Sequence record: OM456492.1
DNA length: 64,000 nucleotides
Direction: 5' to 3' (one strand)
A model generated the notes under the pieces. The model did no database searches. It was not told the DNA's origin and saw only the letters and a program-made list of their open reading frames with translations. This document shows, in pieces, positions 1 through 9,425 of the stretch. Every line of letters starts with the position of its first letter. Position 1 is the first letter of the stretch. The position numbers were made by a program, and so were the translations under genes.

Positions 1-419
1 ATGCAAACAATCTTCCCATATCCATCGAGTTCTATACGTGGAGAAATCGTGATGGTGCCTGCACGCATCACTTCAATCGCTAACGCTTTGAGTGGGCCGT
101 GTGGTGTGAATTCACCGCGGAGTTGAAAGTAACCATCGACAACGCCATAGCAGACGTTCGATACATAACCGCAAACGCGTACGAGTTCAATACAACGTAT
201 CCGATCAATGGCGGCCTTTACTTCCCCGAACGATTGACACGGTTTAATCACAGGCGCGTCGAATTCACAGAAAACGTGTCCGCGACGTAATGCTAACGAT
301 ATCGTTTCGTCGGGACGGGCCGAGTCTTTAAATTCGTCGCACGGTATAGACAGTATCAGTCCACTCGCGGATGCCACGGTTTGTGCGGGTATTTCCTTAA
401 CCTCGGTTTGTAGTTTCAT
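1..419 (-). CDS. Prohead protease (T4 gp21/phiKZ gp175, peptidase S80)-like paralog, probably degenerate; runs off the window
   Basis: Not in the ORF track; manually translated from ATG at 419, open to the window edge. Contains GHVFCEFDAP, IDRIRCIELVRVC, LRGEFTPHGPL and TISPRI, resembling the GExGHP / RxxxI..VC / GxxxPxGP / FSxR blocks of S80 proteases. Confidence 0.55.
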   Translation of the reverse strand, partial: MKLQTEVKEIPAQTVASASGLILSIPCDEFKDSARPDETISLALRRGHVFCEFDAPVIKPCQSFGEVKAAIDRIRCIELVRVCGYVSNVCYGVVDGYFQLRGEFTPHGPLKALAIEVMRAGTITISPRIELDGYGKIVC

Positions 420-510: not shown

Positions 511-719
511 TAATTTTCCTCTTTGAGTATCATGGCAACCGCTTTACGACACGCATCCACCGCATCAGGATAAGTGTCACTGTTCGGGTCCACACGGTCA
601 ATGCACATCCTGAACGTGCTGGTTGCGGTCTCTCGACGTTCCGCAGTACGAGTGCTGGTACTGATTGCGATATAAATACAAAACAGCACCGCCGCGGCGA
701 TAGGCCAACGTAAGTTCAT
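510..719 (-). CDS. Small membrane-anchored protein with a Cys pair
   Basis: N-terminal hydrophobic helix (WPIAAAVLFCIYIAIS); TGATG coupling to the upstream gene. Confidence 0.75.
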   Translation of the reverse strand: MNLRWPIAAAVLFCIYIAISTSTRTAERRETATSTFRMCIDRVDPNSDTYPDAVDACRKAVAMILKEEN

Positions 720-1417
720 CAGTAATCCCCCGTTGCCCCTATTGCAGTCGCTACTTTACTGACAACCTCGTCAACCGGAAGCACCACCTCGTCTTTCTTG
801 CTCACAATCTCTGGTACTTCTTTGACATGTTCAACGGTCACGTCAAACTTCCGAGTATAACCGACAAGTAACTTTGCCATATCTGCACGACTAACGAACT
901 GTTGTTCTTCCGACAGATGTAACGACGTATCAAGTAGTCCAGAATGCATGAAGTTTTCAATGAGCTGGTCTTCTTCCGCTTTGAAGTCGTACCGCTCGTT
1001 CGGTGCAGCCACAAATGCATAACCGAAATACTTCCCCTCTTCCTGTTCAGGGCGTAACGATTTAACTAACTCCTCAGCGTGTTCGCAGAAGTCCGCCAAA
1101 GTATAATCGTCAAGTGTGGCAACTGCGGTTTCTGTTACAATTTCACCGGTGTCGAGTTCAGTGAGGTGCATCACCCAAAGATGCCATGGTCGCGGTTGGT
1201 CGAACAGCCCACCGACTAACATATCTGTGGCGATGGCACGAATACGAGGACTTGCCGTAAAGTGAAAACCACGGCCCGCGTACGGCCCGAGGCGACGAAT
1301 CGAACTGCCGATAAACGTGATACGATTCAGAGCGTTTTCAGCGACGGTGTGTGCCGTACGTTCTGTGGCAACTTTCGGGTTATACTTTTTGTTACGGGGT
1401 TTCTTTTGCTTAGCCAT
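719..1417 (-). CDS. Hypothetical phage protein with basic N-terminus (KKPRNKKYNPK)
   Basis: 232-aa ORF, TAATG-coupled in the operon. Confidence 0.85.
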   Translation of the reverse strand: MAKQKKPRNKKYNPKVATERTAHTVAENALNRITFIGSSIRRLGPYAGRGFHFTASPRIRAIATDMLVGGLFDQPRPWHLWVMHLTELDTGEIVTETAVATLDDYTLADFCEHAEELVKSLRPEQEEGKYFGYAFVAAPNERYDFKAEEDQLIENFMHSGLLDTSLHLSEEQQFVSRADMAKLLVGYTRKFDVTVEHVKEVPEIVSKKDEVVLPVDEVVSKVATAIGATGDY

Positions 1418-1887
1418 TAGTTAAAAACCTTTTTGCAAACTGTGTGGAATACTTTACGAACTTCACGAAGGGATTGTTCGGTGTGCAGATAACGATACGT
1501 TATCTTCCACGCGTTATACGTGTTTTTCAGGGTGATTTCGCTGAGGTCATAAACGAAATCATCATCAGGGTACATGAGTCTCGCCATGGATAAATCCCAC
1601 AATGGTGGAATATCCGCTTTCATTAACTCAGCAACTAGCTCATGCGCTTTGTGCTCAAAGCCAACACCAAGAACAAACACTACATGGAACTCCCCTGGCG
1701 AGTTCTTTTTAGAATATGGTCCGTGTCCATGACATGACCACATTGTCGTCGCGCCGGGGTAACGGCAAATAACTTCACACGCATCCCGTACCCCACGCTC
1801 AACCCAACCGTTTACGAGCGCTTCGGATGCCCGTAGTTTAAACCGATCCAAAACTTTCAGATCCACGCCACCGTATAAAACTGGCAT
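1417..1887 (-). CDS. TYW3-like fold protein (intact SCxG motif)
   Basis: KLRASEALVNGWVERGVRDACEVICRYPGATTMWSCHGH matches the TYW3 N-terminal pattern KxxAxxxLxxGxVDxxIxxLxxxINxxxxxxTxSSCSGR by eye; SD GGAG. Confidence 0.55.
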   Translation of the reverse strand: MPVLYGGVDLKVLDRFKLRASEALVNGWVERGVRDACEVICRYPGATTMWSCHGHGPYSKKNSPGEFHVVFVLGVGFEHKAHELVAELMKADIPPLWDLSMARLMYPDDDFVYDLSEITLKNTYNAWKITYRYLHTEQSLREVRKVFHTVCKKVFN

Positions 1888-1915
1888 CTTTAATTCTCCT
1901 TAAGGGTGTCTTCAT

Positions 1916-2368
1916 TTAATGGTTGTGTTCTGTAAAAATTGCAAGTGCGAGCCAGTGCTCCATCACGCTTTCCATCACATCTGGGTCAGGCCGATAGTTG
2001 AGTCTAAACGTCCAGCTTGGATAACAGAGATTCGCGTTGCCTTCTTGACGCAGCCAAGTAAAGTTTAACTGAAAACGTTTCCCGTATTCGTGCGGCTGCC
2101 ATCCTTCTAATAAATGATTAATGTCTTTAAGACCTGCCTCGGTGGCCACAAATGTTAAGCTGTGGTGTCTACGTGTACGTAGCTTGTCTCCGTCTTTGCG
2201 AACTTCTCCCGTGAATGCCCAAACGGTTGCGATATTCGGCCATTCGCTAAATGCCCTAATAATTGCACGCGTTTTAACATCGACTGGTTTTTCAGCATCC
2301 AGCGCCCGGATTGTGCGCTGCTTGTACGCGGCCAATTCCGCATCATTGACGACTGAACATTGAAACAT
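1916..2368 (-). CDS. Paralog of the 1417-1887 protein, motif degenerate
   Basis: KQRTIRALDAEKPVDVKTRAIIRAFSEWPNIATVWAFTGE aligns with the neighbour; shared C-terminal YxxW-x-(I/F)-x-x-x-Y block. Confidence 0.65.
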   Translation of the reverse strand: MFQCSVVNDAELAAYKQRTIRALDAEKPVDVKTRAIIRAFSEWPNIATVWAFTGEVRKDGDKLRTRRHHSLTFVATEAGLKDINHLLEGWQPHEYGKRFQLNFTWLRQEGNANLCYPSWTFRLNYRPDPDVMESVMEHWLALAIFTEHNH

Positions 2369-2401: not shown

Positions 2402-2427
2402 CCCTACCTAACCGAAGTTAGGTAGGG
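2402..2427 (-). terminator. Intrinsic terminator, cUUCGg loop
   Basis: 11-bp stem CCCTACCTAAC-TTCG-GTTAGGTAGGG followed by a T tract on the minus strand. Confidence 0.9.
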
Positions 2428-2801: not shown

Positions 2802-3116
2802 TTAGACCATCATCTCTAAGCGCACATACTCTTTACGGCTAGGATGTACCTGCGCCATAATCCGATGATGTACACGGTCGATGAGCAACGTTTCGTTTAC
2901 ACGCGGAATAAACCGGAATACGTTTAACGGTAACGTGAACTCAACACCCGTCACAATATTAGACAATGTTATCAGTTCATCGCCGATGCTTTTAACTTCC
3001 GCAACCACAGAACGATCGTGTACCTCACCACCTAACGGGGGTGTGAACGCCCGAATAAAACGGACGTGCAGTTCCTGGTGCGTCAGTGTGGTCTCAATGG
3101 GGTTTAGGCTCGACAT
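2802..3116 (-). CDS. Hypothetical protein
   Basis: C-terminal part of ORF 2802..3278; start moved to MSSLNP (3116) to minimise overlap with 3094..3411. Confidence 0.7.
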   Translation of the reverse strand: MSSLNPIETTLTHQELHVRFIRAFTPPLGGEVHDRSVVAEVKSIGDELITLSNIVTGVEFTLPLNVFRFIPRVNETLLIDRVHHRIMAQVHPSRKEYVRLEMMV

Positions 3117-3411
3117 GAAGCTGTCCTGGGGCATACGCGGTACCTTTTTCATTGGTTGTGTTAGCAACGCACCACATCCACTGCTTAGTTTCTTTGTCTT
3201 GCCAAGAAAACAAGATAGAACCCTCGCGGATTTCAGACGCATCAACTTCGGGATGGAATAACATGAATTCGTTTTCATCGTCGTCCATCACGACATACTG
3301 TCCTTCTTCCATACGGTCGAAGTTAGCGACACCAACGGTAAGCGGTTCCGCGTCGACAGAAAGAGTCACTTCACGTTTTGGCAGGTCACGATGAATAGCA
3401 CTTAACCACAT
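3094..3411 (-). CDS. Hypothetical protein
   Basis: 105-aa ORF with GAGG SD. Confidence 0.75.
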   Translation of the reverse strand: MWLSAIHRDLPKREVTLSVDAEPLTVGVANFDRMEEGQYVVMDDDENEFMLFHPEVDASEIREGSILFSWQDKETKQWMWCVANTTNEKGTAYAPGQLHVEPKPH

Positions 3412-5120: not shown

Positions 5121-5924
5121 TTACGCAAGGGTGTAATGATGCGTGATTACACGATACTCTAACCCTTCGATAGAAGGAAGCTCGTGCTCTATCGCAACAC
5201 CCATGTTGACCTTCTTACCTTTCTGTCCCGCCAAATGCAAAATGGCATGGTAGTGTTTTAGAAACTCTACCGAGTAGGCAATCGGGTCAAAAGTTTGGCA
5301 GCAGAATTGCTCAGTAATGATGCTCTTCGGGAACTCCTTATAGAGCATTAATGAAAACGGTTTCTGGCCGTGCAGCCCCACAAACGCAGAGACAAAACCA
5401 TTTGCTAACTCGCCCAACATCTCTCGCGTTCCTGCGTCTTTTAGCGTAGGTCGCATCAGATAGCAAATATCTTGGGTTTGTTCTAATGACAATGTCTCCA
5501 ACGGGACAACTGATGGGTCTGACGTAAAACCGTATTTCGGACTAACAGTAATCTCCACACGTTTCGTTACAGCTTCGAACCCCAGACGCTGGTATAGTGC
5601 TGCGTGTTCGGTGTCGTGCGGGAAACAGGTAATATCGAGCATCTGCACTTCCAGGAGTCGCGTTAAACGCTTCCACTCGTGGAACAGGGGCTCGGAGAGC
5701 ACGTGCAGCTCGTAGATGTAGTAAACAGTACCTGAACGACATCCACGAAAATACATTTGCGCGCGACCGCTATTGCTCAACACTAACCAATGATCGTCTT
5801 CTTGGTCTGCGACGGGTCGCAAATCTTGAATCCGTTCGCGGAGTTGCCCCAAGGTGGTCAATCGACCACTAAACTCTACGGTCAGGTCGTTTTTGTCCAT
5901 ACCGTATAGATTAAATAGTTGCAT
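5121..5924 (-). CDS. Divergent GNAT-fold protein
   Basis: YIYELHV (beta-4-like) and DTEHAALYQRLGF (GNAT motif B-like); the acetyl-CoA R/QxxGxG loop is not evident. Confidence 0.55.
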   Translation of the reverse strand: MQLFNLYGMDKNDLTVEFSGRLTTLGQLRERIQDLRPVADQEDDHWLVLSNSGRAQMYFRGCRSGTVYYIYELHVLSEPLFHEWKRLTRLLEVQMLDITCFPHDTEHAALYQRLGFEAVTKRVEITVSPKYGFTSDPSVVPLETLSLEQTQDICYLMRPTLKDAGTREMLGELANGFVSAFVGLHGQKPFSLMLYKEFPKSIITEQFCCQTFDPIAYSVEFLKHYHAILHLAGQKGKKVNMGVAIEHELPSIEGLEYRVITHHYTLA

Positions 5925-5933
5925 GTTGGTACC

Positions 5934-6752
5934 TTATAAGGTGCCGATTAGCTCTGTCACCGCTTTACGCTTATTCGCATCCGCAGACATATATCGACCT
6001 ACCTGAACTTCGCGCCAAGTAAAGCCGTAATAAATATCGCGTGTGAGTAACGTATCTGCGTTTGACAGAACGACCTTATTGCCATCGGCAGCTTGTTGTT
6101 TTAAAAGTTTCGCTAACTCGCGGTGGTCAGCTTGTGAAAATTCTTTGCTGTGATACTGCGCGTGTTTAGCCGTATCCGAAAGTGGGATGTAAGGCGGGTC
6201 AGCGTATATCACAGCGTTAGATGGGCACTTATTTAGGATGTCGCGGAAGTCCGCGCAGAGCAATTCGACGTTGGTTTCCGAACAACGTTTTGCCCACGCC
6301 AGAATTTCCTCTTCAGGGAAATAGACACCGTTCGGGTGTTGACCATAGGGCACGTTAAACCCACCCGACTGATTGTATCTGCACAAACCATTGTAACCAT
6401 GACGTGTAAGATACAGGAACATCGCGGCGCGCTGGAGATTAGGTTTCCCCGTGGTTGCTTCGCTGTTAAATCCCTCGCGTCGTTCCATGTAGAGACCGCG
6501 GTCCGTCCCATTTGCAAAGAGCGCCTTTGCTTCCAGAATCAGCGCTTCCGGACGATCGCGCGCCATGGTCAGTAACTCGATTAAGTCCGGGTTCGTGTCG
6601 CCGAGAATATAGTTCGGGTATTTAGTGTTTAAAAACACTGACCCTGCACCCACAAACGGTTCAACGAAATACTCAGCATCTGGAAGCACCTGTAGCAGCT
6701 CGGGAAGTACGCGACTCTTACCACCCATCCATTTTAAAATTGGTCTTATCAC
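5934..6752 (-). CDS. dam: DNA adenine methyltransferase (Dam/D12 family)
   Basis: PILKWMGGKS, FVEPFVGAGSVF (SAM binding), YNGLCRYNQSGGFNVPYG and catalytic IYADPPY; GTG start. Confidence 0.95.
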   Translation of the reverse strand: MIRPILKWMGGKSRVLPELLQVLPDAEYFVEPFVGAGSVFLNTKYPNYILGDTNPDLIELLTMARDRPEALILEAKALFANGTDRGLYMERREGFNSEATTGKPNLQRAAMFLYLTRHGYNGLCRYNQSGGFNVPYGQHPNGVYFPEEEILAWAKRCSETNVELLCADFRDILNKCPSNAVIYADPPYIPLSDTAKHAQYHSKEFSQADHRELAKLLKQQAADGNKVVLSNADTLLTRDIYYGFTWREVQVGRYMSADANKRKAVTELIGTL

Positions 6753-8535: not shown

Positions 8536-8916
8536 CTAGAAAGCTGCTTCTGGAAAGTCGTGTTCAAATGCCCGACGGTCATTCTCTACACGGTTTAAAT
8601 GTGTCGGTAACGACACGCAATTATTACAGATACAAAGTTCTTTATCCCCTTGACTGGGGTCAAAGTCGTACCATTTCCATTCAACGGTATCTCGTTTCGG
8701 GAAGGTACCTTTGCAGTCGTCGCAGACCACTTCTTCCGCCGCAATTGCAGCCTGCAATTTTTCCCAGCAGTCTTCGCACATGTAATACGTTTCGCGGCCC
8801 CATGGGTCGCACTCTGCCGTATAACGTGGAGCTATAGAGCCCACTTTAAGATGTTTACATCGTTCATCCTCTTCCGTCATCACGCGACGGGTGATACCAT
8901 TTACAAACCAATTCAT
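8536..8916 (-). CDS. Cys-rich putative zinc-binding protein
   Basis: CEDC, CDDC and CNNC pairs plus additional Cys/His; SD GGAG. Confidence 0.75.
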   Translation of the reverse strand: MNWFVNGITRRVMTEEDERCKHLKVGSIAPRYTAECDPWGRETYYMCEDCWEKLQAAIAAEEVVCDDCKGTFPKRDTVEWKWYDFDPSQGDKELCICNNCVSLPTHLNRVENDRRAFEHDFPEAAF

Positions 8917-8927
8917 ACGTTTGCTCC

Positions 8928-9293
8928 CTACATCACTGCAGAAGGTTTACGTGCCATGACTTTAAGTCCCGTATCTCGTACCCGGATAGGACAATTATTC
9001 ATGTAATCAATGCAGGATTCTATTTTGAAGCTGTGTCGACATTTACCGTTGATGGAACGGTAGACGATTTCGTAATTCAGGCGCAGTGTATCAGCAACAC
9101 GCATCAACGTTTCAATAGTCACGGCCTTCTCACGTTCATTTTTAATCGCAGATATTTGTGACGGTGAGCAGCCTACTAATAACGCGATGTCTTTCTGCGT
9201 AACGTCCTTCGCAGTAACACGCGTAATAATGTAAGAAAGACGAACCAAAAACGTTTTCTTTGCCAACACAACGGCTTGATGTTTAAAACGCAT
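8928..9293 (-). CDS. XRE/Cro-family helix-turn-helix regulator
   Basis: VTQKDIALLVGCSPSQISAIKNEREKAVTIETLMRVADTL; first gene after an early-type promoter. Confidence 0.85.
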   Translation of the reverse strand: MRFKHQAVVLAKKTFLVRLSYIITRVTAKDVTQKDIALLVGCSPSQISAIKNEREKAVTIETLMRVADTLRLNYEIVYRSINGKCRHSFKIESCIDYMNNCPIRVRDTGLKVMARKPSAVM

Positions 9294-9296
9294 TAG

Positions 9297-9323
9297 AATA
9301 CTCCTTTAGATTAATAGTCGATT
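9297..9323 (-). promoter_or_regulatory. Conserved 27-nt 5' leader/RBS element
   Basis: Minus strand AATCGACTATTAATCTAAAGGAGTATT, identical at 37926-37952; 2 mismatches at 45619-45645. Confidence 0.8.
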
Positions 9324-9343
9324 AGAGAGTTTAACGACAACTC

Positions 9344-9369
9344 TCACTAAGGTAATATATATCTGAAAT
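9344..9369 (-). promoter_or_regulatory. Class A early (vRNAP) promoter, TATATTAC core
   Basis: Minus strand ATTTCAGATATATATTACCTTAGTGA; TATATTAC is the phiKZ early promoter consensus; 26-bp copies at 37974 and 46477. Confidence 0.85.
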
Positions 9370-9425
9370 TTAGTGGACTGGAAGCAAAAAGCATAGGACT
9401 GTTCTGATCTGTAAAAAAGACAATA

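Follow-up and report, generated by a model that had tools for sequence, protein, structure and literature searches.

Two adjacent genes of a Salmonella jumbo phage encode diverged paralogues

The DNA analysed here is a stretch of 64,000 nucleotides from sequence record OM456492.1 (hereafter the window), and near its start it carries two adjacent open reading frames (ORFs), ORF A and ORF B, whose relation to the tRNA methyltransferase TYW3/Taw3 is the subject of this report. Over its first 5 kb the window matches Salmonella phage SaP7 (OM456492), a phage of the SPN3US species, at 100% identity and phage SPN3US itself at 97.9%; both belong to the genus Seoulvirus, phiKZ-related jumbo phages of 240 kb each. 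Both ORFs are on the minus strand, and in SaP7 as well as in SPN3US their products are listed as hypothetical proteins. ORF B (1916-2368), the orthologue of SPN3US_0113, codes for 150 amino acids (aa) and lies upstream of ORF A (1417-1887), the orthologue of SPN3US_0114, which codes for a compact TYW3/Taw3-like protein of 156 aa; the spacer between them is 28 nt. Read from the sequence, A has the motif T-M-W-S-C-H-G-H at residues 48-55 (1723-1746, minus strand), the counterpart of the TYW3 signature (S/T)xSSCxGR, and B has the degenerate motif T-V-W-A-F-T-G-E at its own residues 48-55 (2204-2227, minus strand), in columns that correspond to those of the A motif. Ahead of the motif both proteins have two helices and, at residue 30, an acidic residue in the context V-E in A and V-D in B.

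Pairwise BLASTP of A against B gave no match. Each protein was matched along its entire length by the PHROGs family phrog_7413 (E 4e-56 and 8e-59), and profile-profile comparison of the two sets of orthologues by hhalign gave a probability of 95.7% and an E value of 8.9e-9 across 138 columns, in which the two motifs line up. These profile comparisons confirm, at the level of sequence, that A and B are true paralogues with a similarity well beyond chance, and the two have the same fold. In a quick maximum-likelihood tree A was placed in a clade with its orthologues and the family members P0026, P0029, and P0030 (support 89), and B was placed in a separate, long-stemmed clade (support 99). Since they fall into separate clades, A and B are old paralogues and not a recent tandem duplicate. 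The initial annotation had singled out these two ORFs, with SCHGH in one, AFTGE in the other, and a helix and VE or VD ahead of each, and had described them as a homologous tandem pair; the ORFs and motifs are where it placed them and the homology is borne out, and of the tandem pair it is the adjacency of two paralogues that stands and not a recent duplication. Among Seoulvirus genomes the ratio of nonsynonymous to synonymous substitution rates (dN/dS) was 0.07-0.29 for A and 0.04-0.37 for B, showing purifying selection on both genes. Because the dN/dS of B is well below 1, the gene for B is taken to encode a working protein rather than to be in decay.

Very probable distant homology of the phage family to TYW3/Taw3

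TYW3/Taw3 (PF02676; PDB 1TLJ, 2QG3, 2DRV/2IT2/2IT3, and 2DVK) is the tRNA-wybutosine (yW) N4-methyltransferase and constitutes class IX of the S-adenosylmethionine (SAM) methyltransferases. To our knowledge this is a rare class that carries out one reaction in one pathway, wyosine/wybutosine formation at G37 of tRNA-Phe, in archaea and eukaryotes only, and its mechanism is unresolved. Direct searches with A and B were blank in Pfam (no match at E<=1), PDB sequences, NCBIfam, and PADLOC. An exhaustive search of 1.84 billion representatives with a hidden Markov model (HMM) recovered 49 relatives, counted as clusters at 50% identity, with the consensus ID..I.......N..P...TVWSCSGH. When the profile of this family was run against PDB sequences the best matches were the TYW3 proteins PH1069 and AF_2059 (E 0.007-0.03). 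In the HMMER alignment the family pattern D..I..L...N......T.(W/S)SCSG is in line with the Asp, Ile, Leu, Asn, Thr, and S-C-S-G of TYW3, and the block that ends in TvWSCsG pairs with TtSSCSG of PH1069 and AF_2059. The Pfam family TYW3, PF02676, was matched at E<=1 by 25 of the 39 aligned members and any other family by at most one member. The best relative scored 25.5 bits against PF02676 (E 9.6e-6), below the cut-off of 27 and over profile positions 6-49 only, and the NCBIfam Taw3 models gave sub-threshold scores of 15-17 bits against a cut-off of 200.

The predicted structures led to the same fold. The AlphaFold2 model of A had a mean predicted local distance difference test score (pLDDT) of 78.6 and a predicted template modelling score (pTM) of 0.76, and it was compared with 48,161 PDB representatives. 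For A, Foldseek gave weak and mixed matches, with TYW3 entries at ranks 3-20 (E 0.07-0.25); VIA-align was used to separate these mixed matches. The model of B, which was built on an alignment of 40 sequences, scored higher (pLDDT 93.4, pTM 0.88), and in the Foldseek search with it chains of PH1069 filled the top four rows with a best probability of 0.98. The fold that characterizes TYW3, an N-terminal extension followed by a RAGNYA domain that carries an SHS2 insert, is recognizable in the predicted models of the phage proteins. In a language-model atlas, whose matches serve as leads only, a TYW3 cluster was the first Pfam-named look-alike of A and also of B. Taking sequence profiles and models together, we are confident that the phage proteins are distant homologues of TYW3/Taw3.

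Departures from TYW3 and degeneration of the motif in B

Currie et al. (PMC5311493) recognize the TYW3/Taw3 class by its fold, an Asp in the N-terminal part, the (S/T)xSSCxGR motif, and a His where a strand ends. In yeast TYW3 the Asp, the Cys, and the Arg are essential, and docking places the Asp and the His at SAM (PMC5311493). The likeness of the phage proteins to TYW3 lies in a pair of N-terminal helices, in an acidic residue that starts helix 2, in the spacing of Ile, Leu, and Asn, and in a T-x-x-S-C-x-G loop in the same place. Conservation was calculated over the 36 members of the family that are not of the B type and is given in the numbering of A. Position 30, the counterpart of the TYW3 Asp, is acidic in 100% of them (Asp 78%, Glu 22%, with Glu in A); position 48, Ser or Thr in TYW3, is Thr in 83%; the first and the second Ser of the TYW3 motif correspond to position 50, which is Trp in 89%, and position 51, which is Ser in 86%; the Cys is kept at position 52 in 94% and the Gly at position 54 in 92%; and position 55, where TYW3 has its essential Arg, is His in 97%. 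In addition, Arg19 (92%) and Tyr124 (94%) are near-invariant residues of the family's own. Thus, the N-terminal Asp that is invariant in TYW3 (D25 in SsTaw3) is present as D30 in B and, by a conservative change, as E30 in A and its orthologues. The complete signature (S/T)xSSCxGR is absent from both proteins: A keeps the Thr, the second Ser, the Cys, and the Gly, and B keeps only the Thr and the Gly. A His is found 13-14 residues past the motif, at H68 in A and at H68/H69 in B, where it lies at the end of the strand 62-67 of the model.

Within this framework A has the intact family signature, namely, R19, E30, T48, W50, S51, C52, G54, H55, Y124, and W127. B retains R18, D30, T48, W50, G54, Y116, and W119 and has lost Asn41, Ser51, Cys52, and His55, the last three by the changes S51A, C52F, and H55E at positions where the family is 86-97% conserved. 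It is highly probable that B is inactive for whatever chemistry A performs.

The phage proteins, at about 150 aa, are some 40 residues shorter than TYW3, which has 190-210 aa, and unlike TYW3 they occur in phages of bacteria that are without wyosine. Their predicted secondary structure runs helix, helix, four strands, helix, two strands, helix, from which it seems that the SHS2 insert of TYW3 (strand-helix-strand-strand) is cut down; the models suggest its reduction to a beta-hairpin. Because the motif Arg is lost, the scores stay below threshold, and the wyosine pathway is absent, strict membership in TYW3 fails, and the phage proteins are a new TYW3 branch and not an orthologue. The interpretation of the pair as TYW3-like in the initial annotation has thus to be divided. 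The fold and the distant homology are upheld, by the four top rows of PH1069 in the Foldseek search with B and by PH1069 and AF_2059 as the best PDB matches of the family profile, and strict membership is not, for the motif Arg is His, the scores fall short of the Pfam threshold, and there is no wyosine pathway to serve. Its suggestion of an enzyme and a pseudoenzyme fits what we find, since the motif Cys is intact in A, and the residues that are missing from B, which is under purifying selection, are just those with a putative catalytic role. The two ORFs belong, over their whole length, to phrog_7413, to which PHROGs assigns neither a function nor a connection with TYW3; that connection is what the present analysis adds.

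Distribution of the family and pairing of A-type and B-type genes

Among cultured phages the family was found only in enterobacterial jumbo phages, those of Salmonella, Escherichia, Proteus, and Erwinia, and elsewhere it was met on large viral contigs (94-272 kb), including one with a phiKZ-type capsid domain. The family is confined to large phages. When 185,579 prokaryotic species genomes were scanned for the pattern WSCSGHTxxE no relative turned up, which is weak negative evidence given how narrow this pattern is. Literature searches on TYW3 with phage, on PF02676, and on MTHFR with TYW3 brought up no paper that describes a TYW3-like family in phages.

The arrangement seen in Seoulvirus, a dead B-type gene (W-A-F-T-G-E) upstream and an intact A downstream, is one member of a graded series. 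In Erskinevirus (Asesino and phiEaH2) the upstream B-type protein has W-C-N-E-G-Q and the downstream A has W-A-C-Q-G-H. Machinavirus (ChrisDB and Caitlin) has only a B-type gene, with W-S-C-E-G-L, and nothing of the family downstream of it in the stretches of 5.4-10.5 kb that were read. In Wellingtonvirus (Wellington, pEa_SNUABM_11, and the metagenomic contig L012) the order is the reverse, with an intact protein of the A-side type upstream and a B-type protein with L-C-C-(A/G)-G-H downstream, in which the Cys, the Gly, and the His are kept. A tandem pair of independent origin, with two intact copies, is present in the metagenomic phage L009, which is unrelated to these, and the other large phages sampled generally carry one intact copy. 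This graded series argues that, judged by the motifs, the state of a putative enzyme next to a dead paralogue is specific to the SPN3US lineage, and that pairing is recurrent and not obligatory.

A further phage, represented by a 226-kb contig from a Salmonella sample (L010), has a 154-aa ORF (5462-6001 of that locus) upstream of an intact A-type gene. This ORF matches the family profile weakly (E 1.5e-4) and in its C-terminal half only, and by this match it may represent a B-type paralogue that has eroded still further. Isolate assemblies of Salmonella and E. coli contain 484 near-identical copies of this phage's A-type protein, encoded on contigs of about 224 kb.

Proposed function of A and B and the alternatives

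We propose that A is a TYW3-like enzyme and B its dead paralogue, and we put the probability of this explanation, taken whole, at about 0.5. In this proposal A would bind SAM in the cleft of the N-terminal helices, as docked for SsTaw3; we hold SAM binding by A to be slightly better than an even bet. Cys52, together with His55, would then modify a nucleic-acid base that lies on the exposed beta-sheet of the RAGNYA domain. The reaction would most likely be methylation and the target a base of RNA or, less likely, of DNA; that A is a methyltransferase falls a little short of an even chance when it is judged on its own. The substrate would be other than the wyosine precursors, because the host has none of these and because the essential Arg of TYW3 is systematically His in the phage family. 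The Seoulvirus B protein would be catalytically dead and would still bind SAM, by way of Asp30, or nucleic acid, or A, and so act as a binding or regulatory partner. A is predicted to be an active enzyme, most likely a SAM-dependent methyltransferase. A complex of A with B is putative and, in our view, rather doubtful; since Machinavirus has a B-type gene without an A-type neighbour in the stretches read, an obligate A-B complex is argued against. The furthest extension of the proposal is that the enterobacterial jumbo phages have their own branch of the TYW3 class that installs a so far unknown base modification on host or phage RNA during infection, with B, in Seoulvirus, as the substrate-binding or regulatory subunit of an A-B heterodimer. 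The target could be, for example, a purine in a tRNA anticodon loop, and the modification could shield tRNAs from the anticodon nucleases of the host. We regard this extension as distinctly unlikely.

Several findings weigh against the proposal. The archaeal SsTaw3 showed no activity in vitro and gave no co-crystal with SAM (PMC5311493). Pfam TYW3 is matched by neither A nor B, and its gathering score is not attained by any relative; the sequence similarity to TYW3 is confined to the first 50 or so residues with the remainder coming from predicted structures, and in the model of A the loop with the motif has a pLDDT below 50. A has Glu where TYW3 contacts SAM with Asp, and the candidate column for the TYW3 His (H73 in SsTaw3) is not invariant, with Tyr in 20 and His in 13 of the 39 members. 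The replacement, throughout the family, of the Arg that is essential in yeast by His and of the first Ser by Trp also counts against it, and because of these two changes the chemistry may differ from that of TYW3. The B-type gene of Machinavirus, with no A-type neighbour in the stretches read, tells against an obligate complex of A with B, and the neighbouring genes, which in distant phages are without informative domains, give no functional clue.

The change of Arg to His is the starting point of the alternative that fares best, in which the TYW3 scaffold carries a different chemistry and C52 and H55 form a nucleophile/general-base dyad of a hydrolase, a transferase, or a base-adduct former instead of a methyltransferase. 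In its favour, C52 (94%) and H55 (97%) rank as the two residues with the highest conservation, the latter in place of an Arg that is invariant in TYW3 (PMC5311493), and Trp50 (89%), in place of Ser, could stack on a base. However, every member retains the acidic residue by which TYW3 contacts the sulfonium of SAM, the best-conserved part shared with TYW3 is the cleft of N-terminal helices that holds SAM in the docking model, and the structure searches with A and B gave no likeness to any Cys-His hydrolase fold. We consider this chemistry unlikely.

A second alternative is that the proteins bind SAM or S-adenosylhomocysteine (SAH) and catalyze nothing, serving as a sensor, a sponge, or a regulator in the manner of the C-terminal regulatory domain of MTHFR and of DUF6919. 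These domains, which share with the phage proteins a two-sheet alpha/beta fold, bind SAM or SAH without a Rossmann fold, and the MTHFR regulatory domain dimerises and binds SAM (PMC11701544, PMC13001107). The atlas look-alikes of B include viral clusters from Uroviricota and Nucleocytoviricota with PF21895 MTHFR_C and PF21897 DUF6919 as well as one cluster that mixes TYW3 with MTHFR_C, and B retains Asp30 without the Cys. On the other hand, MTHFR_C and DUF6919 are allosteric regulators and not enzymes, and the Cys loop is not known in them, whereas the Ser-Cys-x-Gly-His loop of the phage family is near-invariant (86-97%) and appears catalytic and not just ligand-binding. MTHFR_C or DUF6919 was matched by none of the 39 members at E<=1, membership in these families, which calls for a profile match and conserved SAM-pocket residues, is not supported, and the structural score was much weaker than that for TYW3. 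A non-catalytic SAM binder has, for us, a small chance of being right. The atlas clusters hint that TYW3, the SAM-binding regulatory domain of MTHFR, and DUF6919 may be one structural superfamily with many viral members.

Less probable again is a non-enzymatic nucleic-acid binder built on a RAGNYA-type sheet, in which the loop with Cys and His would be structural or would bind a metal. RAGNYA domains often bind RNA or DNA without catalysis (PMC2034487), and B is conserved though its motif is gone. Outside the B clade, however, the motif is near-invariant, the conserved Cys and His ligands are too few for a metal site, and the conserved residues match the catalytic centre of TYW3, which together leave this explanation a slim chance. 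Lastly, we give almost no credence to a true TYW3/Taw3 of the wyosine pathway, with imG-14 or yW-86 of tRNA-Phe as the target of methylation: the resemblance is in fold and motif only, the motif Arg is lost, and the scores stay below the cut-offs of Pfam and NCBIfam; the two radical-SAM genes are found some 40 kb off in a tail-fibre context; and since the Wyosine_form domain of TYW1 was not found in the near-identical SPN3US genome, no tRNA gene was found in the window, and Bacteria are without wyosine derivatives (PMC4417183), a wyosine role of the phage pair is very unlikely.

The TYW3-like enzyme with its dead paralogue thus remains our proposal, and the phage family is a previously undescribed branch of a rare methyltransferase class, with a predicted activity that is probably SAM-dependent. 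A compact and diversified branch in large phages of wyosine-free bacteria would show a second use of the TYW3 scaffold. A conserved pair of hypothetical genes in the SPN3US model system, which has amber-mutant genetics, gains a testable function. The family also supplies natural variants for the study of mechanism, with Arg changed to His, Ser changed to Trp, and B-type motifs graded from intact to dead.

Genomic context of the pair

A hairpin that resembles an intrinsic terminator (2402-2427, minus strand), with 11 pairs followed by a T run and identified by a consensus scan only, sits between B and the preceding upstream gene of 101 aa. By its position B, A, and the genes that follow may begin a new transcription unit separate from the upstream gene. 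The gene immediately downstream of A (719-1417, minus strand, from the ORF list and the sequence) codes for a 232-aa protein of phrog_6965 (E 5e-93), the function of which is unknown, and its ATG overlaps the stop codon of ORF A (TAATG). The protein has a very basic N-terminus and no Pfam or NCBIfam match. The phrog_6965 gene is syntenic beside the TYW3-like genes in several related jumbo phages, and in L012 it is found away from them. It was considered as a functional partner of the pair and was set aside, being merely syntenic in the related phages and apart from the pair in L012.

In about 12 records of Salmonella phage SPFM (LR5359xx) the match to both genes of the pair is broken into 2-5 pieces and the proteins as annotated are cut short, with 88-156 aa, and in other SPFM genomes both genes are intact at 90-98% identity. 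The broken copies look like frameshift sequencing errors in these records and not real gene decay. In a phage of about 97% identity both genes are covered at high word depth by contigs of two small transcriptomic runs; we did not use this coverage as evidence because contigs cannot show transcription, strand, or level.

Further downstream, the gene at 3-419 (minus strand, open at the window start) has an SPN3US orthologue that is labelled 'head maturation protease' by RefSeq, and its homologue in a related contig (L007) has the Pfam domain Peptidase_S80. The TYW3-like pair is therefore only about 1 kb from the prohead protease gene. In the Salmonella phages MET_P1_082_240 and SPLA3 and in Erwinia and metagenomic relatives a gene of about 1.76 kb for an HslU/ClpX-like AAA+ ATPase is located at the site that corresponds to 419-510, between the prohead protease gene and a small gene of 69 aa. 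SaP7 and SPN3US have only about 90 bp there, and therefore the AAA+ gene is either missing or was never acquired in their lineage. Upstream of the pair, two ORFs on the minus strand overlap, 2802-3278 (158 aa) and 3094-3411 (105 aa). The records disagree on the gene models for 2802-3411: in SPN3US, RefSeq has a pair of short genes (8802-9116 and 9094-9411 of the locus L001), and in SaP7 only the second is annotated.
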